A stretch of DNA of 64,000 bases. Source: Convolutriloba macropyga. Taxonomy: Eukaryota. The DNA lies in the NCBI RefSeq assembly GCF_964194025.1, contig NC_134476.1:12338001-12402000 (forward strand), read 5' to 3'. A program made the position numbers and the translations under genes. Below the pieces are notes generated by a model, which was not told the origin of the DNA, did no database searches, and saw only the letters and a list, made by a program, of their open reading frames with translations. Below, piece after piece: positions 19,936 to 63,742 of this stretch (the stretch's first letter is position 1; every line of letters starts with the position of its first letter).

Positions 19936-20314
19936 TGTTATACTTAATCGTATTGAATACTTAGGGATTCGCGTTGCGAATACTTGTGTCAAGATTATGA
20001 TAGGAATTGCCAGGCGAATACACAACTACAAACGCGGTGCGAATCCGTTGCTAAATTTAGCTTAAGATTATGAAGAGCGTTTGCAGAGTAACTTGAATTC
20101 AGATTGACTAAATGAAATTATGATTACTTATGATAAACTAGTATGAACAAAATATGAAAGAATTTAGTAGACTAACGGGAATATTAATATAGGTGAATAA
20201 ATAGAAGTCATAACTTTTAGTTATAAAACGCATGATATAAATATAGATATAGAGGTTAAATAATTTAGTACACATAGAAGTTTCGATATATAATAGGTAT
20301 CCATACGTATCACA
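19936..20314 (-). repeat. 3' LTR (379 bp)
   Basis: Direct repeat of 26408-26813, preceded on the - strand by the purine tract GAGGGAAA. Confidence 0.97.
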
Positions 20315-20322
20315 TTTCCCTC
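20315..20322 (-). promoter_or_regulatory. Polypurine tract
   Basis: GAGGGAAA abuts the 3' LTR and is preceded by a T-run on the - strand. Confidence 0.75.
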
Positions 20323-21453
20323 GTGACAAAAAAAATTTAATGTATTTACAATTTTTAAATCAACACAAAACATGTAACCGAGAAGGATGAACATAACTTA
20401 ACTCAAAGTTGTAGAAGTACTACGAATGTGAAATTTAAGAATAATTAACGATGAAAATTTTAGCATATGCAAGGCTTATACATCTAAGAACTTTCAATTG
20501 CACATAGGCTGTGTGTGTTAATGAGTGTAAATTATCACCACTTGACGGATAATTACAGCACATAAAATAATTCTCAATGTTTAATAATTTTGGAATCGCA
20601 AAGCGAAAACGCTTCAAAATTCTTAACATGGAAACTGCGTACATTAAACGAAATAAATTTAGCGCACACACAGTAATGAATGGATTCGCAGGGCAAATAC
20701 TTGAATAAATGTAAAACTGACAATAGGAGAGCAAATGTTATAAATTAAAACACGGTTAACATTAATTTTAGATTAAAGAAGTGGAAACAAGATTAAATAA
20801 ATGAATGGAGTTTATGACAGTTTTGTTGAGTTTTTAATTTAAATTTCATTTTCTGCATCCCAAACAGATAGTTCTCTCTCTTGTTCATATTCATGGTATC
20901 GAACTCTTGAATCTGGTGGCGAAACTTGGCCGATTTGAATTTCCGGTCTTGGGGGAGATAGGATTCTTGAATGTTCCGCACTTTGAATCATGGCTACTAC
21001 TGTATTCGTGGTTGCTGCATCTTGCTTCTCTTTTTTCGATTTACGTTTTTTCTGTTTGCCGGAACTGGTAGAGGTTAGGGAACTGGTAGGCGAAATATCC
21101 GCGTCCGTGAAACCGTAGAATTGGGGCCGATTTCGTTTTCGGGTTCGTTGTTGTTTTTGTGGGTCGGGATGTGTGTCTTGAGTCTGTTGGTTTTGAGAAG
21201 AAGTCATTTGCGGAGCGGGCACTATTGATATCAATTGTTGTTCCTGAACTGTCGCGTCATCATTGTCGTTGATTGGAGCTGCATTTCGGCGACGTTTGGG
21301 CTGTGGTTTTGTAGGTTTACGTACAGTGAAGGCTCTAGACACGTTTGAATTGACTGAGGAAACAACTGAAGTGGTGTCTCGATGCCGATGTCGAATTTCG
21401 ATTTCCCCTCGCTTTTGTTTTTTAATGTCGTTGCTGTGCTTGGCAATCTTTAT

Positions 21454-26408: not shown

Positions 26409-26813
26409 GTTATACTTAATCGTATTGAATAATTAGGGATTCGCGTTGCGAATACTTTTGTCAAGATTATGATAGGAATTGCCAGGCGAATACACAACTA
26501 CTTGTGTATTACGAATTCTGATTATTGGAAACGCGGTGCGAATCCGTTGCTAAATTTAGCTTAAGATTATGAAGAGCGTTTGCAGAGTAACTTGAATTCA
26601 GATTGACTAAATGAAATTATGATTACTTATGATAAACTAGTATGAACAAAATATGAAATAATTTAGTAGACTAACGGGAATATTAATATAGGTGAATAAA
26701 TAGAAGTCATAACTTTTAGTTATAAAACGCATGATATAATTATAGATATAGAGGATAAATAATTTAGTACACATAGAAGTTTCGATATATAATAGGTATC
26801 CATACGTATCACA
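26408..26813 (-). repeat. 5' LTR (406 bp)
   Basis: Direct repeat of 19936-20314, TGTTATAC...TATCACA on +. About 5 substitutions and a 27-bp extra segment relative to the other LTR. Confidence 0.97.
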
Positions 26814-35974: not shown

Positions 35975-36062
35975 CAGCTCCTATAATTCTGTATATCTAT
36001 GTTAACACGGAAATGCAGTTCAATTTATCACTCACATCAGAAGGGCCGCCACTGGTCGACAG
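35975..36062 (+). CDS. GPCR exon: end of TM2 and ECL1 (putative)
   Basis: Tandem TAG/CAG acceptor at 35974/35977. Frame reads xPIILYIYVNTEMQFNLSLTSEGPPLVD. The donor GACAG|GTAGAG (phase 2) matches the TTTTTTAG|A acceptor at 46222. Confidence 0.55.
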
Positions 36063-39000
36063 GTAGAGCTGCTAGCTACCTTTTGCCCTATAAGGGCCTC
36101 TTAAGTGACATTTCAATCACGCTTTCTCGCGAGGCTGGTCACGTGCTCTTTTGAGAGAGAATATGAGAGTATTATGTGCCGAAAATTATGGTAAAGTGCA
36201 AGAGCAGTACAATGGGGAACTTTTCTGTTGCCCCCGCCCCTTCAGTACAACTTATCATGATTAGTATTGCTCTTTTTTATCTACTAGCAAACCATACAAT
36301 GGTGGTTTTCGTGTCTTTCCCATTTAGCCCATGAAGAAATTATAGCCCGCCATTGTCTTATGCTTATATGATGGGCTATTAATTATATGACCCTTAACCG
36401 GGACTCAAAAAACTGAACTAGTTCTTTACTAAAGTTTTTAAGCTGCTCCAAACGATTGACTTTTGTTCCGACCCCACTTGTGGGCGGAGGAACTATATAC
36501 TCAAATGGGTTTTTTTTGTTCAGACAATTTTGGCCGATCGATATAATCATCGTAGAGAGTTGTGAGTGGTATCATTAAACAGCCCGTCCAGCGTAGAAAG
36601 TGGAATTAAAAAGATTTTTTTCAATTTTTGCTTTTTGTAGGGAGTTATTGAGGTTTAAAATTTTGTGAATATTAGACGTTATTCAGCTGTTTTTATTCAC
36701 ATTTTCGGTATTTTTGACCTAATTTTCGTCAATTTTGCTGACGTTTGTTCAAATTGTTAACTTTAGTGTTATTCATTTTATCTCTAAAGATAAAGGAGGT
36801 TTGCTGAAATGTTCGATCCGATTTTTTGGCTAGAACTATGACAAATTTGACTTTTTAGCCCACTTGCTTTAAATTTGCTGGAAGTAGATACCTTAAAACA
36901 AGTTACAAGGCTGACAAACAAGTTAACTGTACTACCGCTGGCTTTGAGAGTCTTCTAGAATTATAATTTTGCTAGTTTTTTGAAAATTTAAAATCGATAA
37001 TTCAACAAAATGAATTTTTGTTTTGACAAGCTGAAAAATTTTGACAAAAAATTGATTCATTTTGTAACCATTTGAACAAACGAGTATTTTATTAGACGCG
37101 CAGCAACTACTGGGTTGATCTTCATCACGCCATGGATCCTTACGATAAAAACTTTTAATGGGGCACGACCTTTCTTTTCAAATTATTTCCGCTACGTAAA
37201 TGTTTTCTTGTTAATTACTGACAAGAATTTCAAATCAGGTCTCAATTATTGACAGATACTATATACATCAAATGTGGTCAAATGCGATTAAATTATGGTT
37301 TCCGAGTAAAGCTCATGGTCTTAGGGCTCTGACCGAATGTTTTCGTAAAAATTTTTTGGACTTCTTCAGTTTCGCTTTCTTTTGTTAATTTTTTTGCAGC
37401 CCAATGACTTATTTCCCCCAATCAAATATCCAATTAGCGTTATAGGAGGTTTAAATTAAACTAGACAACTTTTTCAGTAGTTATCTAATGCCTGTTATGA
37501 CTTTCAATATATTTGTTTTAAGAAAAAATTGGGTCATTTTTGAACTTCGACAATATTTTATTAATACTTTTCTCAACTCCGGGTGCAGTCTCTGAAAAAA
37601 AGCAAAAAGCTTTTTTCTGTTGACTTAAATTAATGTCCGTAAAGGTTTTAAGCTCAACTAACGGTTTCTTTGTTTTGATACTACGCCTTTCAATGATTTT
37701 TTTTATTTTGGAGCAAAATTGCATATTTTTCTAGTTCATTTTGCTTCCTTGTCGAATTATCACAATTATGACAAGACCAAATGAACAAAAACATAAGAGC
37801 AAAAATGCACAGCTTTTGAAAAAGGCTTATTTAAATTTGTTAACTCTTTCTGTTATAGCGTTTATGCTTTTTGGGCCGAAACAAAATTATCTCTCAAAAT
37901 TTTATTGGTTTTTTCTGTTTTTGCCAATGTTTGTCTTTCTTTTTGTTGTCGTACGCCATATATTTGATAACAATAGATCTCAATTGCTTTCTCGAGAAAT
38001 TTAATTCAACCTAGTTAAAGATGTTCATTTATAGCTGTTTGTTTTAATGACTTTCATATTGAATTTAAAAAAAAAAACAATTTTTTCAACTGTATATTTT
38101 TTTATTTCATTTTCGTAACCAAGTAACTCAATCTCACTAATTTCAAGTCTCAGCTACTTTTGCTAACTCAAACATTTTTTGGCGTTGGGTTATGCGTTGT
38201 GACTGATTGCTTCGATCAATATTTTCAATAAAAAACTTTCGAGATGCCTATACTGTTCAGCTTTTGGGTTTAATGTTGTTGTCATGTCTACGTAGTCCTT
38301 TTATAAGGAAAAATCTTTAATGACGAGAAGATGAACATTTACAGTTCTTGGTTGTAAAATCCTATAATTATTGTGCCCTGAACGGTGGGGTGTGTTCTCC
38401 TTAAAATTTTTTTTTGTTTCTTTATATGTTTGTTATTCTCCGTGTTCGTGAATTAGTCTCAATATTACAGGACCAATCGGCTTTTTGACGTGTTGAAGTT
38501 TATTTTATCGCTGTTTTTTGAAATTTTAAGTCTCTGGTGATTTTCGAAAATATTTTTTTTCAAATACATAATTGGGTTTTTTGAGATTCGTCTTTTTTTA
38601 AATAGCTTTTTGGTCAAAATGTAGCTCAGTCTCTGTAAACACAGGTCACAACCCGTTTCCAGTGAGCTTTAGTTTAGCCTCTAAAATTGTTTTAGCCTCA
38701 AAAATTCGTTTCTTGGCTTTGTTACTACTGTGTCTACGAGGTTCTACAAAATATTTAAGATTTTTAATATTTGTACGTTTTATAGGAGTTTTGTCCTCTT
38801 TTTAATATAAAAAAATAATCGTAAGTCCCATTGGCTTTGAAATTTAGCGCAATTGAACATTGGATAATGAAATAACTCAATTCCTTACTATGGAGATATA
38901 AATGAACATATTAGGTATTTTTTTTGATATCTATTGACATTAAAAACTGTGAAATTAATTGTTTTCAAAAATAGGTGCGTATATTTGAACTTCGCACCTC

Positions 39001-42000
39001 TTTGCTCTTTCTTGTCGACCTGTTAACCAGTCGAATTGAAGACAGGTCCCATTTCCTTTCTATTGAAGTGTTTTTCAAATTGTTTTGTTTAGCTTTTATC
39101 TAATGCGAGTTTAAGTTTGTTATAATTTTTTTAATTATAGACATGGAGTTTTGGTTGAGTGTTTGCTGTTGGATGTTTATTATTGTCCTTTCTATTAATC
39201 CTAATGTCGACAACGTTCATCGGCACTCTAGCGTGTCATTATTGTATTCCATTGGTTGTTTATTGAACGATATGTATATTTTTGAAATTTTTCTATCTCT
39301 TCATCATTTGGTAGCCAATTAAGTCAAGAATGTGGATGAGCGGGGTCGGAACCTTATGTGCGTACGCACATTACCGATTCTCTTTGTAATTGTTAATTAC
39401 GCAAAGCAAAAGCTCTGTCCGCACAAATTAGTTGGATTCAATTTTGAAAGAGAGAACTAGCTAACCATTCCAAAACTGATTGGTGGAAAAAAACTCAACG
39501 GCCGAGTACCAAATTATTTTCTATTTTATTTTCAAATTACTCCCAATTAAAATATTTATTTTTTGTTGAATCTCATCACATCCTCACTCTTGTTTTAAGT
39601 AGTTTCTTGGGAATAGATTTTCCATATCTGTCAGGTGTTTTGTGTTGGATTTTCAATTCTCAAAAATTGAACCAAATTTTTCGAGAGGTAAGGGGAAATT
39701 AAAGAAAAACTGCAAGCAACCAAATTTTTTCAACAATTTAAGTTGTTTTTCTTTTTAGTTTTCTCACGACAGATATAAGCATTTCTCTTACCCCTTCTAT
39801 TTCAAAATTTTAAGTCACTGCACAAAAATCACGATTGCTTACCCTCGTCTTCGAGGTACAAAATCGTATCGTAAAAAAACGGTATACGTGAAATTTGATA
39901 TGGAATATCAACAATTCCCTCGTGTGGTTAGGAGGAATAGCTTGATATTTGTCAAACAAGGCACAAAAAAACATCAAGTTTACTCCTTGCGTGAACTTTT
40001 GTAGACAGCAAATACAGGAGAACCAATTAAGCAATCAAATTTTGGGATTGTAAAAGCAAAATTTTATTGATTTACATCAAAGTTATTCTTTAAAATCCCT
40101 GGATAAAAATGATAAAAAAAGCGACTATCAAAATAGTTACCAAGATTAAAAAGGGAGACATAGCCATTAATCTGAGGTGATAACAAGCGATATCGAGGAG
40201 ATTATTGACAAAAATGTTGAGAAGATTGAAGATTAAAGCACAAAAATCGGTAATAAATCAGATAAAAAATGGAGGAAAAAATGAGCTGCAAAAATTAATT
40301 TTGAAAGACATTCCATGCTGCCAAAGATAAAATGAGGTGTCAGGACAAAATATCAACAAACTCCTTACGCCAAAAAACCAATGTCAGGATAAAAAATATT
40401 TCACTCTATTGTTAAAATTACCACATAGACTATTTAATATAATTTGTGATCAAGTATTTTAAATGTAAGACTAGTGAATTTGGCCAAGCCTCCGTGACCC
40501 GTGCGACTTGATTAGAATACTCCGCAAACTCTGCAAACGCTTAAATGTGACAAAATTTTCTTGTATTACCAAATGCTATTGTTTATTCGGGAAAAAAAAA
40601 GTTCAAATGAACTTTGCACGAAAATTGCAGTGAAGCCGGTTAAACCAGAAATCTGTCACTAAGAGCATCAAAATCTTCCAAATTCACAATATTTCAAAGC
40701 CAATTGGACCTTTCGTTAATAATATAAAATAAAAAGAAAACAAAAATCCTTTAAAATGTACAACATAAATAATCTCAAACATTTTACGAAATCTCTTAGT
40801 AAGAGTAGAAAAAACACCAAAAACTATAACCATTATAAAGACTAAAATATAGCTCACTGAAAACGCGTTCTTACCTGTCTTTGCAGAATCTAAGCTATAA
40901 ATCGACCGAAAAGCGATTTATAGAATGGCGAAGCTCAAAAATCCAATTAAAGTTTGAAAACAAATAGTATCAAAAGCAGTAACAGACATAGGATTTAAAA
41001 AAGTTTCAATTAGATTGCAACACCTCAAGAAGCCATCTGCGCCGGATATTAATGAGACCAAGTCACAAGACTACAAAATAAAAACAAATTCAGGCCAAAT
41101 CTCAAACCTCATCAACAACTTTATGACATCACAGTGTTCAAGGCACTATAATTTTAGGTTGTTATTTGCAAGAACTTTAAATTATCAATTGCTTCTCATA
41201 TTAATATCAACGAATTTTCTTTATGAAAGGATTACGTAGACATCACAACAAAAACAGGCCCAAGGTTTGAATAGTATAGAAATATCGACATTTTTAATGA
41301 AACGAAATGGTCGAAGCCATCAGTTAAAACATATAGCCAACCAAGAAAATGATTTTTGATTTAACAAAATTAGTTGACCCTTTTTAGTAGTGAGATTGAT
41401 TACTTGGTGTCAAAAATAAAAGCAAAAAGGGGACAGTTGAAAGATTCTTTTTTTTTAAAAAAAATTTGAAAGTCATTAAAACAAATAGCTATTAACCGAA
41501 GTCTTTGAAAAGTTTCAATTATACGTCCTAGAATTCAATTGAGACCTATCATTATCAAGTTTTTGTTGTACAACAACAAGAAGAAAGACAAACATAGGCA
41601 GGGATAAAAAAAATCCGTGAACTTTTGCCATAGAAATGTGTCTCAGCCAAAAAGCATAAAATATTCAAAAATAACAATTTTTATGTTCAAATACGCCTTT
41701 TTTCCACGACTGTGCATTGTTCCCAATTGTCTTTTCTTTCAATTGGACCTGTCAATAATTCTTGGTCAAGGCGACAACGAAAGAAAATAAACTTATAATG
41801 TATTCAATTAAGCTCAAATTACAAAAAATAATTGAAAATTCTTAGTATCAAAACCAAGAAAACTTTAGTTAACTATAAAACCGTTGACAACAATAACCTA
41901 AAACTCTGAGCAAATGGGTTTCTCCTGTTGTTACTGAGACTACGCTTAAAGTAATTTTTTTTCACCGTAAAATTTTTAACCGTAAGGATCCGTGGCGCGA

Positions 42001-45000: not shown

Positions 45001-48000
45001 GAAGTTTTGTTTGTTGTTTCTATTTGTTGTTTGTTTTGTAATTGCATAAAAAATTGAGTAATGACAAGTCTTACTGCCCTCAAATAGAAGCATAGTTGTC
45101 ATAAAATTGTTGGATGTTTTCAATTGATTTCTAATGCTTTGCATTACTTTGAAATAAATTGTTTTTGGACTTATAAGAGAGTTTTTTAACTTCGCTGTTT
45201 TTGTTTTTTTGTTTAATTTTTACCGACCCTTATTATATCTGGTGCCATATCTTTTCTAGCGAAATACAAGTTAGTTTAATTAGTTTAAGTTTTATCTGAC
45301 GCTATTTTGACTTTGTTTTTAAGTTTTTTTTTCAAATGGACATAAAGTTTTGGATGTATTTAATGTTTGTTGTTTTTGTTGTTTGATTTTGATGTTGGTC
45401 TTGACTTGCTTTCTCAATAATGGCAGATCTACTCAAAATATTGCGGCATTTTTCACTCTACTGACTTGTGTGCTTTGGAGGCGATCTTTTTGTTCATGCT
45501 TTTTTGTTCATACACCTTTTTTGAAAAATACGTGAATTTTGGGGGTTTTCTATCTGTTCCGCATTTGGTAGACAATTATATCAGAAATTTGGATGGGTGG
45601 GGTCGGAACATTATGTCCGATAGCACATTACCGATTCTCCTTATTTCAGTTAGTTTCTCAAATCTCATTATGTCACTGATTCGTCTGATAGAATCATCAA
45701 TAATACATGACTAATTATCCATAAAACGAATAAAATGGCTGATCTAAAACGACCACTGCAACAATGCGATGGTAACCAATATTCTTGGAATTGATTTTCA
45801 AGAATCCGTAACAACTTTAAATCGGCGCTCGCATCTCGGCTTTCGTCAAAAAAGTGCTTTCGATTATTTTCAAAAATGTTTTTGCTTTCTCATTTGTTTT
45901 CTTTGTCGTGTATATATAGCATCATGAAAGTTTGTAGTCATGGATATTTATTTTAAGAGATTTTGAAATTAATTTTTCAGTCAAGTCGCTCAAAATTTAC
46001 CACCTCATAATTTCAGGCTTTTTGGTTAGTTTTCAATTTAAACATTCCATTAAAAGAGTGGGCGGAGAGAATGGGATATATGTTCAAAAATTATAATTTT
46101 TTCGACAAAATTGTTTTCACTGATTATGACCAGAAAAAAGCAAAAAAGAAATTGTTAAACAAAAAATTTTGTGAATTATAATACACGTACATGTTGCGGG
46201 GAAAATTTCAGCCATTTTTTAGAATGCCCTCTGTATACCTTGTTCGTTTAGGTTGCCAGCTTTACAATTCAATGGACGTATTGTGTATGTCGTTCTCTGT
46301 CAACATCCTTGTCATAATGTCATTCGAGCGGTACACAATGATCAAACGACCCATGCAGAGACAGACCATCAAATTCTATCGTGCGATCATCAAAGGCATC
46401 GTGGCATTTATCATCGCAATCTTCATCTCATCACCAATGTTTGCAATCAGCGACAAACTCACACTAGATATCAGGCAGTTGTTTCCTTTTATGGCAATGA
46501 GTTAAGTTTTTTAAGTTAATAAAAACAACATGCGTAAACAGAATATGGCTGTTCGGTTGTTCGGCTGTAATAACCCAGCTTGTGGTATATCAAGCTAACA
46601 AAGTTGTAACAGAGTTTTGGTGCAACGGAAGCATGTCCGGCCAGGGTTGTGGAGATAGTAGTTCGAGTCCTCTAAGCTTTAATTCTTTAGCATTATATGG
46701 AGTTAGCTGGTACCCCAGTTGGGTTGTTACTTGTCAAGGTTCGGGCAAAAGTTGAATGACATGTTGAGATGGTATCAATTTCCGGAAAATTGGTAAACCT
46801 AAGGCCTTTGAAGATTGCTTACCGAAAAATAAAAAATTGCGAATAAGAGAGCCAAGTTTTTGGAATTAATAGTCGCAAAGAAGAAAGGTCAGTTTTAATT
46901 ACTTAAGATTAAATGCATAATATTGCCATTAAGCATGCAAAAATGTATGACCGATTTTCTCAATTGCTGAAGTCAAAGATTGTGAATGCCGATAAGAATT
47001 ATCAGCAATAAACTTTCGCAAATTCCAAAAAAGAAAACTAATAAAATTTTAACTACAGATTAAATTTTTCGTGTGTAGTAAAATATTATAATAATCTCCT
47101 TAGTGACTGATGAATCGAAAAACTTGCGAGAAGAAGATCTTGCAAAAAATGCAAACGGCTTCCCTTTTCTTGCATGACTCTTGCAAGTTTTTTTATTTCT
47201 CCTGAAAAATTTTGCTTATTCTTTAATTTGCTTGCAGGATTGGCTGCAGTGGGCGACTGGTAGATCTGATATATGAAGGTTAGAGATTAAATAGCTGATA
47301 TTGTGCCGGAAAATTTTTTCAGTCAAGTTAAAAACCGATTTGCAGATTTTTCGGTATGTTCTGGTTGTATTACTCTCCTCATTTTTATTGTGGACGGCAG
47401 TGGCAGAGTTAATTATATTAATTATAGGACAATCGATCAGAGCACTAGGTATTAAAGCAGGCTGAAAAAGTTCTCTACAACATTACGTGAACTAATAACA
47501 TAACATAAAAAATTATAAACGCTAATATTTTCTGGACAAAGTAATAAAAAAAGTGACAATAAACAATGTACCTTTTGTTTGAAGATCTACAAGGAAGTAA
47601 TAAAATTTCTAAACAACCTAAAAACTGGGTCCAAAGATTGTTTTCGTTGCCGTTTGATGCCTTAAAGATTATTTGATTGGAAGTACATTGCTTTTTTGGC
47701 AAAAAACGTTACTATTTGGCGCAGTTTTGGTTTTGCATCATAAGTGTTACCGGTTTTGCATCAAAATCAAGTTTTTAACAAGGCCATCTAAAAACTCGTT
47801 GCGACTGCCAATCATGAGATTTTTTGCTGCAGAAAAATTTTAAGGCAAAATTTGCGAAATATCAATATTCAAAAAATTTTCCTCTTTTGGTTTCTCTATA
47901 AACATTTTGTTTGAAAAAATGAAAGAAAAGAGTTGCAAGTAATTGTTTTTGTTGAAAAATTGGAGTTTAAAATTTGATGACTCGAGATGTTTCTAGGTTT

Positions 48001-51000: not shown

Positions 51001-54000
51001 CATGTCTCAACTGCTTCCCATGGGGATTTAAATGAACATTTTGGAAATTTCAATGCAATTAACTCTTTTCAAAAATAAAAACTTATTTTTGAACTTCGCA
51101 CCTCGCTGCTCTTTTTTGCCGACCTATTAACCAGTCGCATTGAGTACAGGACCCATATTTTTCTAATGATCTATAGGTTAAACAATTTCGTTTAGGTTTT
51201 CTCTGATTCGAGTTGGATTTTGTTATGATTTTATTTATTATAGAAATCGAGTTCTGGTCGTAAATAGTGTTTTTTGTTTGATATTATAGTCCTTTCTAGT
51301 AATCATATTATCAACAACGTTCATCGGCCCTCTAGGGTGGCATTATTGTGTTCCATTGGTTGTTTTTGGAACGATTTGTATGTTTTAGAAAGTTTTCTAT
51401 CGCTTCATCATTTGGAAGTCAATTAAGTCAAGAATGTGGATGAGCGGGGTCGGAACTTTATGTGCGTACGCACATTACCGAGCCTCCTTGTTAGTAATAT
51501 GTAATCGGCTTTGAAATTTCTCAGAAAACTCTGCATAATAACATAAAAGGAAACGTTTCTATTATCAGCATGAACAACGAAAACAACATCAACAACCAAA
51601 CTAGTGACGTAATCAAACAGCCAGCATCACAAACGCTCCAGCAACTTCGCAATCTAACTTCGACCACCGAAGATGTTCCAGAACTTACAGAATCACGACT
51701 TAGTAACTCGACCATAACCATAATTCGCTGCGTTACAGGATTCAACCACTCAACTTTTCACACATATTATGAAGTTTTCATCTATTTCGCAATTTTCTTC
51801 ATACCTGGTGGGCTTATCTCGACTTGTTACATGTTGCTAGTTAAATCGTTCCGAAGAAATGCGCAATACTTCAGCTCGGCAACGGATAACACGGCTAACA
51901 GCAGCAGTAACCCGAACAATTCGGTCACCGAGACCAGGTATGGTAAATCTTTTCCCCTGCCCCCACCCCGACCGCCCCACCTCCAAGTCATAGATTCGGG
52001 ATATTTCTGCGTCTACCGTCTGATGAATTGATTCCTAACAAAGTTGTATTTGAAAATACCTGTAAATAAGGGATACGGGTTTCAGGTTTCCGTCAGTTTT
52101 GATTGTTATTTAGATCGGATTATCAACGGTCATTGGACTATTTCATCGGACAAGTTTTGCATGAGCGTTAAGGAACTTGCATCTTATCAGATCTTACACA
52201 ACAAAAATTTCCGAATCACGGCAACCCTTCTATCCTGCTCTCCAATTCCTCATACCCCATCACGGCCCCTCCCTTGCTTTCAGTCTTCTTTGACATTAAA
52301 CACCCTCCCCCTCCCCCCCGCACGTCGGGGTACTTTTCACATAGCAACGTGTTTTACGACATAAATTCGCTATCTGGGAGGGGGGGGGGGGGGGGGGGGG
52401 TGGGGGGGTCTAATCTAATTGGCTCTGGGGTGTTGGAAAGGGGTAAAATAATGGAATAGATTTGAGGGCTCAATCTCCAGGCTTAAGGTTACAGTGACAG
52501 ATTGCTAATTATTTCTGCGCGCGAAGTGAATTCTTTTCTATTTTTATCACTCAGTAAAAAACACATGTACTTAATGGTCCAATTTATAATTTTAGGCATC
52601 ATAAGCGCATGAATGGAAACTTTATTATCTTAATTGATTGGTCAATTTGCCGCTCACTCATAAATTCCATTGAACAATCTCCACCGTTTTGAAACAAGCT
52701 TTCTTAAACTGAGATCTTGTGAAAACTTGTCATTATACTAGAATAAATAATCTGTAATTTATACTTAAGTTCTATGATGGCATGACAATGTGTATCAAAT
52801 AGCAAAAAAGGAGAACACCCAAAATCACCAACCTAAGTTATAAAATCAAGTACGATACGTCATCATCTAACTGATATTTTAAAAAAAGAATGGCCTTTCA
52901 AATCGTAGAATTTGTTCATTATTTGCTACAGATATCTTTAAACCAAAAAAGGTGTTTAAAAAATCTAGCTGCTAGCAAACGGAAAATTGTCCGGTATGCT
53001 GGTAGCTAGAATTTATATGAAAACTTTATTATCTTCATTGATTGATTAAATTCTTGTTCGCTCATAAATTCTATTCAACAATCTCCACCGTTTTTAAACA
53101 AATTTTTTAAGAAAGATATCTTATAATATTTTAGCATAAAGCTAAAACTAAATTTATCTCTTAAATTTACACTAGTACAAATAATCTCTAATTTATACGT
53201 AAGTTCTATGATGGCATGACAATGTGTATCAAATAGTAAAAAAAGGAAAATCAGCCAGAACCAGGAACCTAATTGATAAAGTCAATTACGATATGTCATC
53301 ATCTAACTGATATTTAAAAAAAAGAGAATGGCCTTTCAAGTCGTTTAAATTGTTTATTGTTTGCTACAGATACCTTTAAACCAAAAATCGTGCTTATAAA
53401 ATTTATCTGCTAGCAAACAAAAAATTGTCGGTTTTTAGCAGCTAGATAAAAAAGAAAAGCACCCAAAACCAGGAACCCAGATTAAAAATCAAGCATGATA
53501 TGCATGATCTAACTGATATATAAGAAAAGAATGGCCTTTCAAATACGATAAAAAGTTTATTTCTCACATAGCAACACGTTTTACGGCGTAAATTCGCTAA
53601 CTGGGACAGGGGTCTAATCTAATTGGCTCTGGTGTTGGAAAAGTCAAAAATAAAGGAATAGATTCAAAGTCTCAGCCTCCAGGCTTAAAGTTACAGTGAA
53701 AGATTGCTAATTATTTCTGCGCGCGAAGTCAACTTTTTTCTGTTTTTATCACTCAGTAAAAAAAATACACTTACTTAATGTTCCAAGTTGTCACTTTAGG
53801 CATAGTAAGCGCATGCATGAAAATTGTATTATCTCTCTAGATTGACCAGTTTGTCGCTCGCTCATAAATTTTAGTCAAGAGTCTCCATCATTTTGAAACA
53901 AGTTTTTTTAAACTATGATCTTATATAGACTTGTCATTAAAAACTACGACTAAGCTATACTAAAATTATCTCAATTTCATTGATGGTGTGACAATGTGTA

Positions 54001-55045
54001 TTAAATAGCAAAAAAAAAGAAAAACACCCAAAACCAGCAATTTATGCTATAAAACCAAGTAAGATATGATTTGATCGAACTGATGTTTAAAAAAAGTGTA
54101 GCAATTCAAATATTACATTTCTTTCACAGTTTTTCTATCACATTTTTTCTTAATTTTTTCTCACTTTTTGTATACGAATCCTACAGAAAAAAAACTATTT
54201 TTCAGCCAAGTACATCAAGTTTTCTTTAAAATAAAATTTTATCACAAATGTGAAAATGAAAACACATCAAGGAAGGAAAAATGAGGAAAGAAAAAAGACA
54301 TTGCTCCCGGGGCGGGGTGGGGTGATGGGGTTGACAGATCGCGCTGAAATTTAAGATAAAAACGAATGGAGAAATTTTTTTTGAATTTAGTCAGATTAAT
54401 AAGGTTCTGATTGTAATGAGTAATTCATTAAATTTTCAAGCCACAAATAACTATTTTATCTATTTGACCAAAAACTTTGAAAAAATCAAATGTTTTATCC
54501 TTAATATCTCAGAATTTTGTAAAATCATTTTAAATCTGTCTCTCTCTTTTTGGTCGATTGAACCATTGTAATAACCCATGTATCTCCCACTGAAAAGATT
54601 TTCAAAATAGCCAAATTATAAAAAAAATTTAGAGAAGTCTTTTAAATTCTAAATGATCGAGCATTTTTTGCAATCAATACTTCCTATTTACTCAGAAGTA
54701 CTTATTTTGTTATTTTATGCATTAAAAACAGCCTTTAACGTTACCTGACGTGTTGGAGAAAAGTAGAGGTAGAAAGCAAAAACTGTTAGAAATTTGCTGC
54801 AAATAATTGTAAAGCAAAAAAATTGCTAAAAAAATCTAGCTGGTAACGCATCTATTAGACTTGAAAATAAATGTATGCTAATGAAACATCAAAAATGACA
54901 TAATTTTAAGAAAAAACTCAGAAAAAACTAGTTTAGATTTTTGTGACAATTTTATATATACTGATACAATCGCCTCAAGAAGTCCACTAATTGTTTTCCA
55001 GACATAATGATCTATTTTTGTTGGCGCCAGTGTTTTTTTTGTGTT

Positions 55046-55083
<38 letters not shown>

Positions 55084-58000
55084 GGTGCGCTTGTAGGAAT
55101 GTACATGTTGGTGTATCTGACTGCGTGTGTATGTAATTTTGTGTGTGTGTGTGACTATAATATGGAAAGAGACAATGAAAGAGAGACTTGTTCTAAGAAA
55201 GTAAGTTCGTTTTATGTTAGACAGAGATGGAAAAAGATTTGCAAAACTGTCAGAATTAAAAAAAAAGATAAACTATTTAATTTATCTTACAATTTGCCTT
55301 CTTGTATATGTGAAAAACCAATATTAATTAAATGTTTTTAAGACTCAATGGTAACACATATTTAAGATTTCAGAGATTTTACTGTTGTTATGCTCATGAG
55401 ACATAATTACTGAAAAGTTTAATCGGTGAGTTTATATCACAAACTATCGCCAAAGGTACATTTACCGATAAAATTAGCTCTAAATTTCCATACCAAGTTA
55501 TTTAGAAAAACAAAGAAGACAAAAATGAACGGTGACACATCTTGAGTGAAAATCATTTGCAAAAAAAAAGTTTTTATTGGTGTTGGTATATATGTTTGTG
55601 TGTGTTTGTGCTTGTGTCTGCCTTGTGTCTGGTGTGTTGTTAAGTGAGGTTTGTCTGTGTCGGAGCCTTTAAAACTGTACTAAACTTATCTTTATAGAAT
55701 GGGCTAGTGAGTTTCTGTTTTTGTCTGCCGAGAAATGACGGCATATGTTTTGGTTCATGTAGTACAATAATTTTTTTCCGATGTGTATAAGTTCTTTTCT
55801 GATAGTTCCAACGTTTTCTCTGACGGAAATTCAGGGTTGTTTTTGAAATCTAGACAGGTATGTTGGAACATACTGTGCTACGCACAGACTCGCACGAACC
55901 ATCTTGTTTGCGATATATTTTAAGCCAGTCTGAAATGCCAATTGCCGGTTCTAAATCCAGTATAAATTTTGGGCGCTTGGATCCCACTGGTCGTATATAA
56001 AACACTTATGTATACAAGAGGTTTAATCATATGTTTATATATCCGTTCTCCGTTAAAATTTCTGAATCTAATTGCTTGTTGTATAAAGGTTTACGCAGGT
56101 CGGGTCAGAAGTATGAACAATATGCTCCAGAACACAATTCAAAATAGTCGCTGATAGTTTGAAATGACGCGACCAAAAGTATGGTCCAATGTGTGTATTT
56201 AATGTGTGAAATGTACTCAACAACCGATAAAAAATGGCCCAATCACAACTCTACCAACAAAACCCAGTTGTCAATTTTTGATTTGTTTGGATAATACTCT
56301 CTGATCCGTCTCGTTGGTAACAATTTCAAGTCTCGTTTGTAAAACATTTGCAAGATTTCAGGGAAGTGATTGTTGTTATACTCATGAAACATCAATACCG
56401 ACAAAAATTATTCAAAAAGTTCATATCAAAAATTATTGCCAAAGGTACAATTACCAATAAAATTTGCTCAAAAATTCCATATCAAGTTATTTAGAATTAG
56501 CAAAGAATACTTAAAGGAACAGTGACGCTTCTTAAGTGAAAATTAGTTGCCAAAAACGTTAATTTTTTTGTTGTTGGTGTTTCTGTTTGTGTGTGTTTGT
56601 GTTTGTGTGTGCGAAGTGTCTGGTGTGAGTAGGTTAGTGAGGTTTGTCTGTGTCGGTGCCTTTCAAATGGTACTAAACTTATATTTTTAGAAAGTTCTAG
56701 TGAGTTTTTTTGTCTGCCAAAAAATGGCGGGATATTTCTTGGCTCAAACAGTACAATTAATTTCTTCCAATGCGTATAAGTTGCTTTCTGATACTTCCTA
56801 CGGTTTCTCTGAGAGAAATTAATGGTTGTACTTGCAATCTAGACAGGTATGTTAGAACATACTGTGCTACGCACAGAATCGCACGCACCACCTTGTTTGC
56901 GATATATTATAAGTCAGTCAGAGATGTCAATTTTCAGTTGTAAATCAAGTATAAATTTGGGCGCTTGGGCCCGACTGGAGGTATATATAACATTTATGTA
57001 TATCGGAGGTGTTATCACATGCTTAAATATTTGTTCTTAAGTAAAATCAGTGAATTCAATTGCTTGTCATATCATGGTTTACCCATGTTGAGGTGGAAAT
57101 ATGAACAATATGCTCCAGACCACAATTCGAAATAGTGGGCTGACAATTTGAAATGACGCGATAGAAAGTATTGTGCAAACGGTGTATTTAATGTTTGAGA
57201 TGTACTCAACACCAGATAATAAAAGGTCAAATCACAATTCTACCAATAAAACCCAGTCGTCAAGCTTTGATTTGCCTGGATATTACTCTATGATTGGGTA
57301 AAATTCACGGGAATCTTGGTTTATCAGAAACGGTACTGAAATATGTCGAAATAGATAACAAGTTTGCTAATTGAGTTCCTGAAACGAGCAAAATCCAAAC
57401 GTATATGAATCTCACATGATTGTAATTAAGAACAGGTATACAAACATATGATTGTGCCTCCGTTATATAGGTTAACCAAGGGAAAGTTTGAGCGCGTGAG
57501 CCCGTTTGGAGGTATGTATCAGAATTGATATATACCTCCAAACGGGCCCAGGAGCCCAAATTTACCCTTGGGCTCATTGCGGTAACAAGAATGACATCCT
57601 TACTGTAAGGGTTCCTAACCTTACTCTAAGACTTTTTCAGCACTGATTCAGAGGGTGACTAAAGTCGCATTTCGGACTGAAATTCTTCTAATTCAAAGCC
57701 AATTCAGAAATTCATTCTAAGTGTTCTCAGAATCAGAGAAATTCAGAATCACTGTTCTGAAATATTTCTGATTATACAGATTGAAAACTTACAAATTGTC
57801 TAATATGTTCTGATTCAGTACTGTTACCCACTGAACGTTGGGTACGGGTTTACAATTATTCTATCTGTTTTAAAGGGTTCGCCAGATCAAGCGACTGTCC
57901 AGAATGGTATTGATCATAATCTCGTGCTACATGGTCTGTTTTCTACCCTTTGGGACCCTGAGGCTGATCCAGTTTGTTCACCCCGTGGCTGCGCCCAATG

Positions 58001-61000
58001 AGGTGTTCTACACTTTCATCACAATGACATACCTCAATGCCAGCATGAACCCTATTCTCTACACGTTCCTCAGTAACAGGCTAGCCGAAAAAATTAGTTT
58101 GAGTATAAAATTTAACAAAGCTTGGCGTAAACCTGCTTGATAGACCACGATGTAATCGGTTTCGGAAAAAAAAACCACGGAAAAAACCCAACCCAAAGTT
58201 AAATAGGAAAAAAAAACCCCATGGAAAGAAACCCCCAAGAAAAAAAACCCCACGGAAATAAACCCGCACTTTACTGCCAAAGAGATGTAAACTCAATCAA
58301 ATTAAATTAATTGAATAATTAAATGAATTATAATTACACTTACACAGATTCTAACACAATTAAACAGATAAAAGCAAAATATTGAAACAGTTTCTGAAAA
58401 TGATATGTTTGAAGAAATTGCTCGCAAATATTTCAATAATTGATATTCGTGTGCAGCACAAACAATTCGTTTTATTCTGCCATGATTTTCATTTTTTTTT
58501 TTCACTATCTCTTTTCCCTTTTTGTTGTGCCACGGTAAACTCTTGAAGCGCTTGTTGTCTGTGTATCGCCTCTAAAAATTGCTCTGTATATTGCCCCGAC
58601 CTTGCAGGCGCTATGCGCGCATTTAATAAATCTCAGAACTAAAAAAAAATGTAGATAAAATCTCTCAAAAAATTGCAAGAAACTGATGTATACATTAGTA
58701 ACAAGTAACTAGAATAGCTTAGTCGACAAAATTTTGAACAAAAATTTGTCAAGAAAAGCCCAAATTCACCCTTGAATCCTATCCAAGGAATATTTTGTTA
58801 AGTATAGGTACAGGGGGATTCTCTACCAGGTATCAAAGGGGTCAATTATCAATAAGATACGAATACTTACAGATCATTTATTGGTCATGTGGTTAGATAT
58901 CATCGATTCAAGCAAAATACTATACTCTTCCGAAAACTTTCAACCCTTTTATTAGAAAAATTTTAATCAAAGAAATTTCATTTCTTCAAATATCTTTAAA
59001 AGAAACTTTTAAGATTTCTTTTTCAGATTTCTGTTTTTCTGACCTTAAGATTTCAGATTTCAAAAAAAACTTCAACTTTCGGATTTTAAAATTTCAAAAA
59101 TTTTTAATCAAAGAAATTTTAGAATTTTTAGGATCATTAGATTAATGCATCAGAATGGCTACACGTAAAGAACGAAAATTAAAAATTTCCACTGTGCGAT
59201 GCATATAAAAACACAATATTGAAAAAGTCATTTTAAATTGCAAGAGAGGATGTTTCTTTACATAATCCATCAAAAAAATTGCTAAAGCAGAATTTTGTTG
59301 ATATAATACATTCCAAAGTCGAAATTTTTAATGAAATAAGATATAACTTGATGTGGTACAATATCAAATTTTGCAATTTAAATAGATTAAGGGTAACTTT
59401 TAGAAAAAAATTTCGACGAAATATTCTGGTTGAAAAAAGCTCCTAAGAGAGCCTGGTAAAAAAAACTCGCAAATATTACTAGTAACTTCTAGTTCAAAAA
59501 CATGAATCAATATGTTTAGACTTGATATAATTAAAAAAGATATGCTGGCTGAAGAACAACTATGTTGTTTGACTTGTTAGCGCCTTAACTAAAACGCTTT
59601 TACGCCCCGCAAAATATCTGTAAGAGAAATTCACAAACTCAGTAGATGACCGCTTAATACTATGACAAATTGTTTTTTTTTTGCCTTTCAACAGTTTTTT
59701 TTTCTTTTTTAACATCAAATACTACCTCACAATAATTTTGATGTCTGATAAGATATACAAGTGTGTTTCCATCTTAATAGAACTATTTCAACTGCATCAG
59801 GAAAGATCTGGTGCAATGGTTGGCAAAAAAAGTTCGATGCAATAATCTGTTTTTGGTAAGTTTTGACTCTTTGGAGTAACTAACCACAAAAACTTATAGA
59901 GAAAGGGAAAAAGGAAAGCAAATGAAGTCGATTGCCGCAAAATAAACAACAAAATTACAATTACGATAACTACTAAAAATTACAACAAAACAAATTAATC
60001 TGTGTCATTTTATTTAACCAGTTGCAACCAGATATACTTTCATCAAATATTGGAAAATCTTTTAATTTAAACTAAGTTAAGTTTAATTAGTTAATATTTA
60101 ATTGAACAAAACAGCAAAATTTAACCACAAAATTGAAAATTGTCCGAAAAATTGAGAAATCAAGTTCAGTTTCAAAACAAAAAAACCATTATTTAAATTA
60201 AAATACAGCACTAAAGACAATATTCTATCTCACTTAAAAATTTAAACTCTCTAAGTTAACGCTAAATAGGTTACAAATGAGACAAAATGGGCAAATCAGA
60301 AAAATTTTATTTATTCATTTTTTTCTATGATCATAAGTAAACATATGCCTTCACAACCATATGCTTTCAGCGAAAACTCAACTATTTTGTCAAATTCTAA
60401 CTACCTATCGGACATGGCATTGATGAGGAGTCTAAGTCAAAAAAATACAAAACAACGGCTATTCCAGCCACCTCTCAAAATTTCACAAATGTTTTTTTGC
60501 AAACTCAGTTCTGATGCCAAAAAAAACATAAAACTTTCGCTGACATATTAATGTATATTCCTCGGCCTTCTTTTGCTTGCAAATCTGATAAAGTAACTAA
60601 ATAGACAAAAAAATTCAAGATTTCAAAAAAATATTGTGAAAGTTAGAGATTTATCGTTTCATAGTAGCAAAACAGCTGGCGAAGTTCAAGAACTCATTGA
60701 AAAATTTCAAAAATTTTCTTGAGAGCAATTAAAACTATGAGCTTCACTCAGAAAACACGTTGTATTTTGTTTTGACCTCATTTTAAGCTAAATGGGGCCT
60801 TTTGTTTATTTAAACTCACCAATTAAAAACCGAGTTGTCTGTATTTGGGACGGAGATAGTTGCAAAAAAATTATAAAGCCCACAGAGTCAAAAAATATCC
60901 AATTCTTTTTTGGTAGCAAAATCAGGCAGATATTGTTCCAAATAATTGCGCATATAAAAATTTGGCGAAAGATTTATCTTTTTTTAAAAAATGATGTTGA

Positions 61001-63742
61001 ATTTTTGATAAAAAGCAATAAAAGTTAGCGAAAGGCCGTCAAACTGTTAGTTCAAATGTTTTCATAGAAATCAGAGTTGAAAATGGCCCTATTTGTGTAA
61101 GCGATAATCTTTTCCTCGTTCTTTTTGTGTTTGCTAGCAGTCAATTTGAATAAAAAAGGATAAAGAGTTATATTTTGATCCATTTTTTATGAAAAGTGAC
61201 AAATATGTTAATTTTTCAAAAAAAAAAACTAGGAAAAAAGTTGCTTAAAACAATTGACTGAACAAAAAACCCAGTTGAACTTATAGTTCCTTCCCACTAA
61301 AGTGGGTCGGAACAACTACCGTTAAAAAAGTCTGGTCGTAAAATTGAACCATGACCCAAAAAAATAGTCGATCCCCTACTACTTTTTTAGGGTTTTATTA
61401 GAAATCCTATCGCATCAAGTCTTCAACATTTCTCCTCAAACCTTCAAAATTTCCTACAAGGTCCTACGTTCGTTTTCAGTTCTCAATCGGTAATGACCTT
61501 TCTTATAACCTAACAGCCTATTATTTTTCCCTAATGCAGCTTTGCAGCATCTACTGGCTGTACGAAAAGCTGATATCTCCCATTAAAACATTCACGAGCA
61601 CATTTTAAAATGCCGAAAGTCAGCAGTGCCAGAGGTTAAAATGCCATAAGTTGCTACTTAGCCAGAAGTTGAATTTCGTTGGCTTTCGTCATTTTAAAAC
61701 GTGCGCGTTTAATGTTTTAAGCATGGTTATATGACTCTGCAGAAGTCACTTCGAAATTCAGACTTAAAATCTCGAACCACTTCGCGGTTCTCGATAAACG
61801 CCAAAAGTTCTCAGTGACTTCAAGCAGAGTCACTAAACCATTACTTAAAGCATCCCCATAAAATTATAGTCACTGTTATGGTACATTGACGGTTATGAGG
61901 GCGGGCTATGCGTAATTTGGTCATTAAGCGTGTGGTTAGGGCCATAATAGGAAAATTACCAAGAAAACTGATAGGGGGTCTATTCAAGCTCAACTACTGT
62001 GAAAATGGACCAGTACTGGATTCGAACCAGCGTCTCTTACCTGCAAGCCTAGTGTGCTACCCATTTACACCAACTGGTCTTGGCTCTCGAACTTGGGCAT
62101 CTCTTATAACCCGTTCTCACGCTCTTTCTTGTTCCTCGAGGCTTCATTTCTCTAGCCAAGTATACGTTGAACAAGTAGAGCTTCTTGTCAAGCTATGTGA
62201 AGCTTATCTCATGCACAGTTTACATTAGGTTGTTCTCTCTCAACCTTCTAACAAAAACATTTTGAAAGAAGTAAATCAAGAGTAACTAGCAAGCCCGCAA
62301 AAGCATCACAAAATCATATCCGAGCAGGTTTTAAAAAATATAGGATTTTTTCGTGGCAACTCGGGCTCGAACCCATGCCCCTCTTTTAACAGCCACAGCT
62401 CTTGCTTCTTAGGCTACCGACGCGTATATTTGGCGTCCATTACCTTATTTAAGAGCAAATTTTTGTTAAGCGACAATTTTGGCTTTGCTGTAATTAAGGT
62501 GCGCTATGTTAAACGAGCGCAATGAATTAGCATAAACCGAGCTTCTAAACCAAAACTTCTACAACAAAAGACAACCAAATCCCAAAATTATTTCAGAGTA
62601 CATTTCAGAGTATATTTCAGAGATCCTTTTCCTCCCCTACTTGGGCTCGAACCCATGTCCCTCGCTTGACAGCTATAGCTCGATTCCATTGCTACATAAG
62701 CAAAATTTTTATCAATGTCTTTTTTGTTTCGCGTGTTTTTGCTAAGCCGTATGCTAATGCAGAGCAGGCTCCTAGGCATGATTGTGTGGGATGCATTCTT
62801 AAGGATCGCTAAAACATGTGAACATAGGAGCGCTGCTAAACATTGCGTTCAAGTGCGACTAAGACGAAAAATATTGGTCGATGGCTTTTTGTCTCGCTTG
62901 TTTTTGCTAAGCCGTATGCTTAATGAGCAAAAAAAACATTTACAGATCAGGCACCTAAGCATGGTCGTGTAGGCTGCATGTTTAAGGATCGTTAAAACAT
63001 GTGAAGATAGGAGCGTCGTTAACCACTGCGTTCAAGTGCGACTTACATTTACTATATTAGATAAAGAAGAATAAATTAGAAGGGAAAGAAAGAAGGGCGC
63101 GAGAAGGAAACACAGTAGTGGATGAAAAACAAGATTCTACATTTTTGAGACAAAAAAAGAGGCCATATTTTGCACCGACTCGGTCTCGAACCTATGCCCC
63201 TCGCTTCACAGACACAGGTGTAATCCCTTGCACTACCGACGCCTGATACTGTTGTCTATCCCTAGTGGCTACATACGAATATTGGTCGATGGCTTTTTGT
63301 CTCGATTGTTTTTGCTCAGCCGTATGCTTGATGAGCAAAAGAACCTTTACAGATCAGGCACTTAAGCATGGTCGTGTAGGCTGCATGTTTCAGGATCGCT
63401 AAAACACGTGAAGATAGGAGCGTTGTTAACCATTGCGTTCAAGTGCGACTTACATTTAATAAATTAGATAATTGCAGTTTGAGTTAAACTGAATGAGATG
63501 TTTCCAGATATCAAAACCGGATCAAGGCACTGTGCGGCAGAGTTGGCCAGTTATGTCGGGTGGTGTGTCCTCGTGTTGTAATAAGATCTGGCCAGACAAT
63601 CGTGAGGAGCCGTGACGTCAGCATGTCTCCTCTCAGTGGAGTGGGGGGAGGGGGCAGAACGAGTTACAGTCACTTGACAGCCCAGAAGAAATATAGCAAT
63701 GTCAACACAAAGACGTCATCTTACAACGTCTCTCAATTATAA
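35975..63742 (+). CDS. Multi-exon class A (rhodopsin-like) peptide GPCR, urotensin-II/MCH/somatostatin-receptor-like, 5'-partial. Model: join(35975 or 35978..36062, 46223..46474, 51569..51937, 57876..58079, 63508..63742)
   Basis: The joined exons give one open frame: end of TM2 (PIILYIYVN), C3.25 and TM3 (CQLYNSMDVLCMSFSVNILVIMSFERY), TM4 (ISSP), ECL2 Cys, TM5 (FFIPGGLISTCY), TM6 (CFLP), TM7 (MNPILY) and helix 8 (NRYQNRIKALC). Internal exons are 252, 369 and 204 nt, all multiples of 3, and all introns are phase 2. Confidence 0.8.
36461..39387 (+). mobile_element. Non-autonomous Helentron/HINE-like element, complete copy (~2.9 kb)
   Basis: 5' end TTTTGTTCCGACCCCAC-TT-GTGGG..GGAAC (subTIR plus partial inverted copy). 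3' end GGGGTCGGAAC (39342-39352), perfect palindrome ATGTGCGTACGCACAT (39356-39371) and TACCGATTCTCTTT tail. No TSD, T-rich ends, no ORF. Confidence 0.8.
40690..42723 (-). mobile_element. HINE-like element, inverted copy, 3' end not found
   Basis: The reverse complement begins TTGTTCCGACCCACTTTAGTGGGGGAGGAAC. Collinear similarity to 36461-38850 is traceable to ~40690. Confidence 0.75.
43627..45645 (+). mobile_element. HINE-like element, complete diverged copy (~2.0 kb)
   Basis: TGTTCCGACCC at 43631; GGGGTCGGAACA at 45599-45610; decayed palindrome ATGTCCGATAGCACAT; TACCGATTCTCCTT tail. Confidence 0.78.
46223..46474 (+). CDS. GPCR exon: TM3 (ERY motif), ICL2, TM4
   Basis: Lies within ORF 46191..46505 and carries LGCQLYNSMDV...MSFERY...ISSPMF. 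Acceptor is TTTTTTAG at 46222 (alternative TTTAG at 46251). The 3' boundary is inferred from the GC donor ATCAG|GCAGTT. Confidence 0.85.
46612..46680 (+). repeat. Decayed tRNA-derived head
   Basis: TGGTGCAACGGAAGCA (A box) and AGTTCGAGTCC (B box) at tRNA spacing. Confidence 0.4.
48651..51492 (+). mobile_element. HINE-like element (~2.8 kb) with a small 5' deletion
   Basis: TGTTCCGA at 48651, then the shared 5' block (GTTCAGACAATTTTGG..CGATCGATATAA). 3' end GGGGTCGGAAC 51446-51456 and palindrome 51460-51475. Collinear with 37400-39387. Confidence 0.8.
51569..51937 (+). CDS. GPCR exon: long N/S/T-rich ECL2, TM5, ICL3
   Basis: Lies within ORF 51570..52031: IRCVTGF, then YYEVFIYFAIFFIPGGLISTCYMLLV. 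Acceptor TTTCTATTATCAG at 51568; donor ACCAG|GTATGG at 51937. Confidence 0.85.
52333..54110. repeat. Older composite direct repeats (period ~1.23 kb with nested 0.2-0.4 kb subunits)
   Basis: TCACATAGCAAC..TTTTACG at ~52337 and ~53564. Subunits ATGGCATGACAATGTGTATCAAATAG and ATCTAACTGATAT recur 3-4 times. Confidence 0.85.
55047..55080. repeat. (GT)n microsatellite
   Basis: GT dinucleotide run. Confidence 0.93.
55360..57290. repeat. Diverged tandem duplication, 2 x ~990 bp
   Basis: AATCTAGACAGGTATGTT.GAACATACTGTGCTACGCACAGA and TATGAACAATATGCTCCAGA occur about 988 bp apart. Confidence 0.9.
57876..58079 (+). CDS. GPCR exon: TM6, ECL3, TM7 (NPxxY)
   Basis: Acceptor TTTTAAAG at 57875 is in phase with the previous donor. 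Reads VRQIKRLSRMVLIIISCYMVCFLPF...TYLNASMNPILYTFLSN. Confidence 0.9.
58157..58270. repeat. Short GGAAAAAAACCCCAC-type repeats, probable DNA-transposon terminus
   Basis: CGGTTTCGGAAAAAAAAACCAC followed by about five degenerate 14-16-bp units. Confidence 0.5.
60700..61315 (-). mobile_element. HINE-like element, 5' part, inverted
   Basis: The reverse complement begins TTGTTCCGACCCACTTTAGTGGGAAGGAACTAT. An internal GAGTGAAGCTCAT match lies near 60740. Left limit uncertain. Confidence 0.65.
62006..62079 (-). pseudogene. tRNA-like Pol III element (pseudo-tRNA or SINE head), nominal anticodon TGC
   Basis: GACCAGT/ACTGGTC acceptor stem, GTGT/GCAC D-stem, GCTGG-TTCGAAT-CCAGT T-arm and a TTTT terminator. 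The anticodon stem has two mismatches. Confidence 0.7.
62714..63470. repeat. Three ~150-190-bp direct repeats interleaved with tRNA-like heads
   Basis: TTTTTGCT.AGCCGTATGCT...TGCGTTCAAGTGCGACT at ~62735, ~62900 and ~63310. Confidence 0.85.
63172..63242 (-). repeat. tRNA-derived SINE-like head (related decayed copies at ~62353-62423 and ~62635-62700)
   Basis: Reverse complement GCGTCGGTAGTGCAAGG...GGTTCGAGACC...TCGGTGC has A box and B box at tRNA spacing. Confidence 0.6.
63508..63742 (+). CDS. GPCR terminal exon: helix 8 and Ser/Thr-rich C-tail
   Basis: Acceptor TTTCCAG at 63507. The frame YQNRIKALCGRVGQLCRVVCP...SSYNVSQL* is continuous with ORF 63560..63742 and gives an amphipathic helix 8 followed by Cys residues. 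It is a higher-GC island within AT-rich DNA. Confidence 0.7.

Follow-up and report, generated by a model that had tools for sequence, protein, structure and literature searches.

Exon chain of a rhodopsin-type receptor gene

We analyzed a receptor gene in a 64,000-nucleotide stretch of the genome of the acoel Convolutriloba macropyga (RefSeq assembly GCF_964194025.1, contig NC_134476.1, positions 12,338,001 to 12,402,000 of the forward strand), referred to here as the window, which is AT-rich (~33% G+C) and filled with repeats. An earlier note on this DNA had assembled the receptor from exons that all end in CAG, with GC at two of four donors, and had drawn from them a possible splice code peculiar to the organism. 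Its observation is partly confirmed by the comparisons given below. The + strand of the window encodes the part of a rhodopsin-type receptor from the third transmembrane helix (TM3) to the C terminus in four exons. The three introns between these exons are lacking in the closest relatives of the gene, and we propose that they may have arisen as insertions into a single coding exon. In the following list, as in the text, a slash marks the border between exon and intron.

46252-46474, + strand: exon with TM3 (including ERY) and TM4; Pfam 7tm_1; acceptor ttcgtttag/ in phase 1, at a position common to all paralogs
46475-51568 (5094 bases), + strand: intron 2; likeliest form GC...AG, atcag/GCAGTT ... 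tattatcag/c
51569-51937, + strand: exon with extracellular loop 2, TM5, and part of intracellular loop 3; Pfam 7tm_1; colinear with homologues
51938-57875 (5938 bases), + strand: intron 3; GT-AG, accag/GTATGG ... ttttaaag/g
57876-58079, + strand: exon with TM6 and TM7 (CFLPF, NPILY); Pfam 7tm_1
58080-63507 (5428 bases), + strand: intron 4; aacag/GCTAGCC ... tttccag/a here, aacag/GTTAGCC in the other haplotype
63508-63742, + strand: last coding exon, with helix 8 (YQNRIKALC), a tail ending in VSQL, and the stop codon; frame as in P0001 (YQNRLKNL...VSQL), P0003, and P0006

Three open reading frame (ORF) pieces on the + strand matched the Pfam family 7tm_1 at successive profile positions (58-127, 126-189, and 204-260), the first of them, in the exon carrying TM3 and TM4 (TM3-4 exon), with an E value of 9.8e-11, and the motifs ERY, CFLPF, and NPILY are all intact. 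Joining the exons at 46474/51569, 51937/57876, and 58079/63508 yields 342 residues. A full HMMER search with the TM3-4 exon as the query defined the homologue family (P0001, P0002, P0003, P0006, and P0007), whose tree is poorly resolved and in which P0001 is the nearest relative of the window gene (63% identity, and 78% in the TM3-4 exon). Over the last two joints, the joined product is colinear without gaps with P0001, P0002, and P0003, and it ends in VSQL like P0001. The spliced ...VTETR/VRQIKRLS... at 51937/57876 faces ...VTEMRVRQIKRLS... in the homologue, and ...FLSNR/YQNRIKAL... at 58079/63508 faces ...FLSNRYQNRLKNL..., gap-free in either case. Since the homologues that are matched in this way are single ORFs, both junctions can be regarded as sound, and the joined exons reproduce the homologue frame through the conserved tail. 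Colinearity with the homologues thus bears out the exon chain that had been reconstructed from TM3 onward. The four junction strings listed in the earlier note (gacag/GTAGAG at 36062, atcag/GCAGTT at 46474, accag/GTATGG at 51937, and aacag/GCTAGC at 58079) are all present, and it is true of all four that the donor follows CAG and that none reads GTAAGT.

The junction at 58079 had been credited with creating a textbook helix 8, and read-through to a stop at 58140 had been dismissed. Both judgments were right, as the homologue frame continues in the exon at 63508. The sole GT in the vicinity, ctca/GTAACA (58072/58073), lies 7 bases upstream of the GC donor, and its use would shift the frame of the last exon, so that the conserved tail is lost. 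Intron 4 of this assembly therefore falls under the definition of a GC-AG intron, only aacag/GC...ccag/a yielding the conserved SNR/YQNR frame. Used with the same acceptor, the GT site at 58072-58078 (ctca/GTAACA) would lead to an early end of the protein, and it could compete with the weaker GC allele.

The 5' end of the earlier chain did not hold up. It had been placed as follows.

35999-36062, + strand: first exon as earlier claimed, donor gacag/GTAGAG; unsupported

This junction would give MLTRKCSSIYHSHQKGRHWST-G-CQLYN before TM3, lacking TM1-2 and having no homologue. All paralogs have an acceptor before TM3, and an exon upstream of it must therefore exist; a TM1-2 exon was not found in 5-10 kb upstream of four paralog loci. 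Just downstream of the 36062 donor lies an ORF (36212-36331, + strand) that starts with MGNFSV and contains one hydrophobic helix ending in ...LLANHTMVVFV. It was considered as the N terminus and first helix of a G-protein-coupled receptor and was set aside, the likeness being loose and having no Pfam or homology support.

Intronless paralogs and a second haplotype

In P0001, P0002, and P0003, which lie on genomic contigs of 39-235 kb, the region from TM3 to the C terminus is one uninterrupted ORF each. The paralogs all keep the older phase-1 acceptor directly before GCQLYN, yet they are without introns 2, 3, and 4; given this shared acceptor, they are not plain retrocopies. Introns 2, 3, and 4 are specific to the window gene, its closest relatives being without them, and by parsimony their gain in the window gene is the most economical reading.

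A further match, P0008 on a 309-kb contig, is 94% identical to the 153-residue ORF of the TM5 exon. The locus L005 comes from that contig and follows the window colinearly between 46616 and ~60300. Within 51522-51879, it departs from the window at 14 positions, and the variant letters of the DNA runs X1 and X4 are precisely these, with both forms occurring in X1; therefore, L005 represents another haplotype of the same organism. The intronless paralog P0002 sits in the same assembly as L005. L005 likewise contains introns 3 and 4. Both the donor and the acceptor of intron 3, as well as the acceptor of intron 2, are shared between L005 and the window, and the coding pieces are open in both haplotypes.

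The two haplotypes part at the donor of intron 4, which reads taacag/GTTAGCC in L005 versus taacag/GCTAGCC in the window. At the corresponding site, the intronless paralogs read AAC AGG TAC or AAC AGG TAT. T is therefore ancestral, the GC of the window is derived by a T>C change, and the G and T of the donor are old codon letters. Thus, the GC donor at 58080-58081 reported in the earlier note is true of this assembly, but it is a single-letter variant of a donor that reads GT in L005. T>C at donor position +2 is the substitution best tolerated by U2-type splicing. All bases of the TM6-7 exon are identical between the haplotypes (204/204), while its flanks differ at 14/173 (Fisher P of 1.4e-5), and the divergence beyond the exon begins at position +2 of intron 4.

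In the TM5 exon, the haplotypes differ at 10 positions, which amount to 8 amino acid changes, located in the loops, and 2 silent ones. Seven of the eight amino acid differences fall within 25 codons of extracellular loop 2 (51624-51696), and the helices carry silent changes only; the loop may be a fast-evolving, ligand-facing one. The first ~120 bases of intron 3 (51938-52060) are identical between the haplotypes, including the ORF tail that runs through the donor (...TETRYGKSFPLPPPRPPHLQ...). A splicing element, an alternative 3' end, or a recent exchange between the haplotypes could account for this block.

The other haplotype (L006, L007, and L008, on ctg37237 of ERZ25071359) has >37 kb of extra DNA inside intron 2, upstream of the equivalent of 46616, so that the structure of a single gene differs very widely between its two haplotypes. 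The extra DNA contains ORFs with DNA_pol_B_2, Endonuclease_7, and double-jelly-roll-like domains (a Polinton/Maverick-like element), together with reverse transcriptase ORFs.

Intron 2, border repeats, and a possible origin by insertion

For intron 2, the junction 46474/51569 proposed earlier is plausible and is the best in-frame choice, but it is not unique, and homology cannot fix it because extracellular loop 2 is too variable. Stop-free alternatives in frame are a GT at 46478 (exon end 46477) and a GT at 46481 (exon end 46480), to which can be added the GC at 46494 paired with the acceptor at 51524 and the GT at 46501 paired with the acceptor at 51549. The candidate A/GTTAAG had been discarded in the earlier note for running into a stop; this is correct with the acceptors at 51524 and 51568, whereas its pairing with the acceptor at 51549, which stays open, was overlooked. 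Scored with a donor weight matrix of vertebrate frequencies, used for ranking only, the flank at 46474 reached +2.1, against scores of -8.8 and -10.4 at the two GT sites that follow it by 3 and 6 bases. Intron 2 therefore likely starts with GC at 46475.

Two arms of an inverted repeat lie close to the ends of intron 2, and a repeat of high copy number occupies much of its interior.

46481-46493, + strand: GTTTCCTTTTATG, 5' arm of the pair, occupying bases 7 to 19 of intron 2
51542-51554, + strand: CATAAAAGGAAAC, 3' arm of the pair, 15-27 bases upstream of the AG that ends intron 2
48650-51490, no strand assigned: high-copy repeat in intron 2, absent from the other haplotype, with a self-match to 37402-39387

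The 13-base inverted repeat is exact and subterminal, not terminal. It has only two copies in the window, inverted to each other, where 0.30 would be expected at ≤1 mismatch, and the duplex of the two arms has an energy of -24.8 kcal/mol versus -14.0 ± 3.5 for shuffles. One A of the 3' arm is G in the other haplotype and would still pair with U in RNA (a single observation). End pairing in introns 1, 3, and 4 was no better than in shuffles, so that intron 2 alone has a stem, and no inverted terminal repeats were found in introns 3 and 4. An inverted repeat at the start of intron 3 was discarded as mere C-run/G-run low complexity, and a common element at the intron ends was rejected, the ends of the three introns being without similarity.

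In the DNA runs, single-copy depth was seen at both ends of intron 2 and at the 5' end of intron 3, while the middle of intron 2 (48538-51522) is at very high copy; word depth is 10^4 to 10^5 in the repeat versus ~20-70 in its flanks. L005 passes straight from the equivalent of 48649 to that of 51491, which identifies the repeat as a later insertion.

Short direct repeats are found at the borders of all three introns: TATCAG at either border of intron 2, AGG at either border of intron 3, and CAGG[T/C] with CAGAT at intron 4. The longest of them is positioned as follows.

46469-46474 and 51563-51568, + strand: TATCAG direct repeat of intron 2

Exact removal of the three introns leaves borders that all read G[T/C]...AG after AG. 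New introns are expected at AG/G proto-splice sites, with poor intronic donor positions. We considered a course of events in which three insertions, now behaving as introns 2, 3, and 4, would have divided a formerly single coding exon. Each insertion would have entered directly after an exonic (C)AG, at an AG/G site, with a small duplication, the upstream copy of the repeat providing the exonic CAG/G and the downstream copy the AG of the acceptor. The weakness of the donors would follow from their youth and from an origin in sequence that was not made for this role. Both intron 3 and intron 4 would have begun with a GT donor, the G and T of intron 4 coming from the old AGG TAT codons, and the GC at 58080 in the window haplotype would have arisen afterwards, by T>C at position +2. 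The inverted arms in intron 2 would probably be a remnant of the inserted element, and in RNA they could bring the splice sites together. On this account, repeats at the insertion sites would supply the exonic CAG without any change in U1, U5, or U6. A receptor exon split by insertions, with young introns that have weak donors, is to our judgment the best explanation of the locus and a reasonably probable one.

The reverse order of events would be that the three 3' introns are old, weak donors included, and were lost together in the paralogs by recombination with cDNA. Such recombination removes 3' introns first, and the paralogs, which keep only the 5' intron before TM3, display the pattern of cDNA-mediated loss, within a family whose tree is not settled. 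A loss would, however, be required in each of at least three separate intronless lineages (P0001, P0002, and P0003, with identities of 46-63% among themselves or with the window gene), unless the window gene were the outgroup, whereas it is closest to P0001. Together with the border repeats and the inverted repeat of intron 2, which point to insertion, these considerations make an ancient origin of the introns highly improbable.

Several observations weigh against origin by insertion and subsequent splicing. The choice between gain and loss rests on parsimony within the poorly resolved tree. Three-base direct repeats that contain AG are common at ordinary introns, and only the six-base TATCAG is clearly beyond expectation; the ranking of the intron 2 donors leans on the vertebrate frequencies mentioned above. 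A run search restricted to RNA libraries listed none, and the four runs that contain the TM5 exon are genomic DNA, as seen from their even depth across the introns and a depth of up to 10^5 in repeats. A motif and hydrophobicity scan of the 46 kb upstream found no TM1-2 exons, nor did a Pfam scan of ten candidates return 7tm_1. The ratio of 8 amino acid to 2 silent differences in the TM5 exon does not point to strong constraint, conservation in some intron blocks equals that of the exons, exon and intron divergence of the haplotypes overlap, and purifying selection was not shown overall in the comparison of the two haplotypes. Finally, the 37 kb upstream of the intron sequence that both haplotypes share did not yield the TM3-4 exon of the other haplotype; an ORF search and exact look-ups gave no match for it, and a walk over these 37 kb of the contig, which was also aimed at the intron 2 donor, met only repeats and Polinton-like genes.

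Part of this evidence would also suit a dead gene, in which the three blocks are plain insertions, nothing is spliced, and the GC "donors" have no meaning. The missing RNA evidence, the missing TM1-2 exons, and the replacement differences in the TM5 exon all fit a pseudogene, as do the heavy repeat load, with its insertion of >37 kb in the other haplotype, and the T>C change at donor position +2, which is also expected from decay. Against decay stand the four pieces that are open in both haplotypes and give an in-frame, full-length match ending in the conserved VSQL, the intact ERY, CFLPF, and NPILY motifs, and a TM6-7 exon that remained identical while its flanks diverged. Furthermore, random insertion into a dead gene would be unlikely to give G[T/C]...AG after AG at every one of the three exact-removal borders, for which our own estimate is ~3% per intron. 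We consider the pseudogene improbable on these grounds.

Donor rule, known intron classes, and other elements of the window

We then weighed the insertion reading against the splice code advanced in the earlier note. In that proposal, 5' splice sites would be set mainly by exonic (C)AG plus the G at +1, through a change in U1, U5, or U6. If so, GC (and elsewhere GA or GG) would serve as well as GT, and the donors of this locus would be nothing unusual for the species. In its favor, GC is the likeliest start of intron 2, in a poor context, and the gene with the GC allele of intron 4 has intact exons. On the other hand, of the three supported donors, two read GT in one or both haplotypes, the GC of intron 4 is derived, the CAG is accounted for by insertion-site repeats, and three young introns of one gene are uninformative about a genome-wide donor logo. 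A search with Rfam found no small nuclear RNA within the 64-kb window. An altered spliceosome thus appears unlikely. A species-wide code does not follow from four sites of which the one at 36062 is unsupported, the GC at 58080 is derived, three belong to introns that appear young, and the CAG coincides with border repeats; a CAG-plus-G code is not established from this locus alone. It is also doubtful, if slightly less so, that the major spliceosome of this acoel widely accepts donors with G followed by a letter other than T after exonic AG, aided by pairing of the intron ends. Were this the case, inserted DNA could become introns at once, and the GT/GC allelic pair without a stem, beside a GC donor with a stem, would provide a natural test.

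GC-AG introns of the U2 type make up ~0.5-1% of introns in most animals, and known GC donors are usually near-perfect in the remaining consensus (GCAAGT). Like them, intron 4 and probably intron 2 run from GC to AG and are preceded by exonic CAG, and intron 4 displays the GT/GC pair directly as two alleles. In contrast, the remainder of the donor is poor here (GCTAGC and GCAGTT): the exonic CAG is present, whereas nothing near CAG/GCAAGT follows it. Excision of these introns is predicted from genomic sequence.

Insertion-born introns are known as the introner elements of Micromonas and Aureococcus and as the new introns flanked by short repeats in Daphnia. The introns of the window resemble them in that their positions are specific to one gene, being absent from the close homologues P0001, P0002, and P0003, that direct repeats at the borders may supply letters of the splice sites, and that intron 2 has inverted repeats near its ends and a likely non-GT start. 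Unlike those introns, they are not a proliferating family of many copies, the intron ends being single copy; the three share no end sequence, their border repeats differ in length, and their present size is 5-6 kb, with repeats that came later filling them. To our knowledge, a relaxed 5' splice-site rule has so far been documented among animals only in appendicularian tunicates. Animal parallels for non-canonical splicing come from the same group (PMC11282704, PMC13326754), which includes Fritillaria borealis with non-canonical introns derived from miniature inverted-repeat transposable elements (PMC11282704). A literature search found no paper on non-canonical splicing in acoels.

A third class was examined at intron 2, where GTTTCCTT at 46481 resembles the U12-type donor RTATCCTT and occupies an in-frame donor position. 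U12-type introns carry the branch site TCCTTAAC 10-26 bases before their 3' end. The motif of the window carries T at +3, where A is nearly invariant in U12-type donors, the sequence before the acceptor contains no branch site like TCCTTAAC, and the motif is itself part of the inverted repeat; the U12 reading was rejected on this basis.

If the three introns are spliced, the locus would cleanly document the recent gain of introns in an animal gene. Intronless paralogs persist in the same genome, the border repeats have stayed legible, and the donors remain weak. The GT/GC allelic pair would further allow the cost of a GC start in this species to be measured directly in heterozygotes. Such a measure would tell whether the species has a relaxed donor rule, which this locus alone does not reveal.

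Apart from the receptor gene, the window contains a long terminal repeat (LTR) retrotransposon and a tandem array.

20030-26813, - strand: LTR retrotransposon with 285-base LTRs that are 98.9% identical and gag-pol ORFs of 753, 388, and 422 residues
5082-15554: tandem array with long units of ~1.5 kb and 2.56 kb, 97-98% identical

An element related to the retrotransposon is present in the paralog locus L004. Within intron 4, a tRNA match (Rfam RF00005, 46.9 bits) was found on the - strand at 62007-62079; it adjoins a G+C-richer block of ~410-base repeats (62360-63470) that ends 36 bases before the acceptor of the intron.

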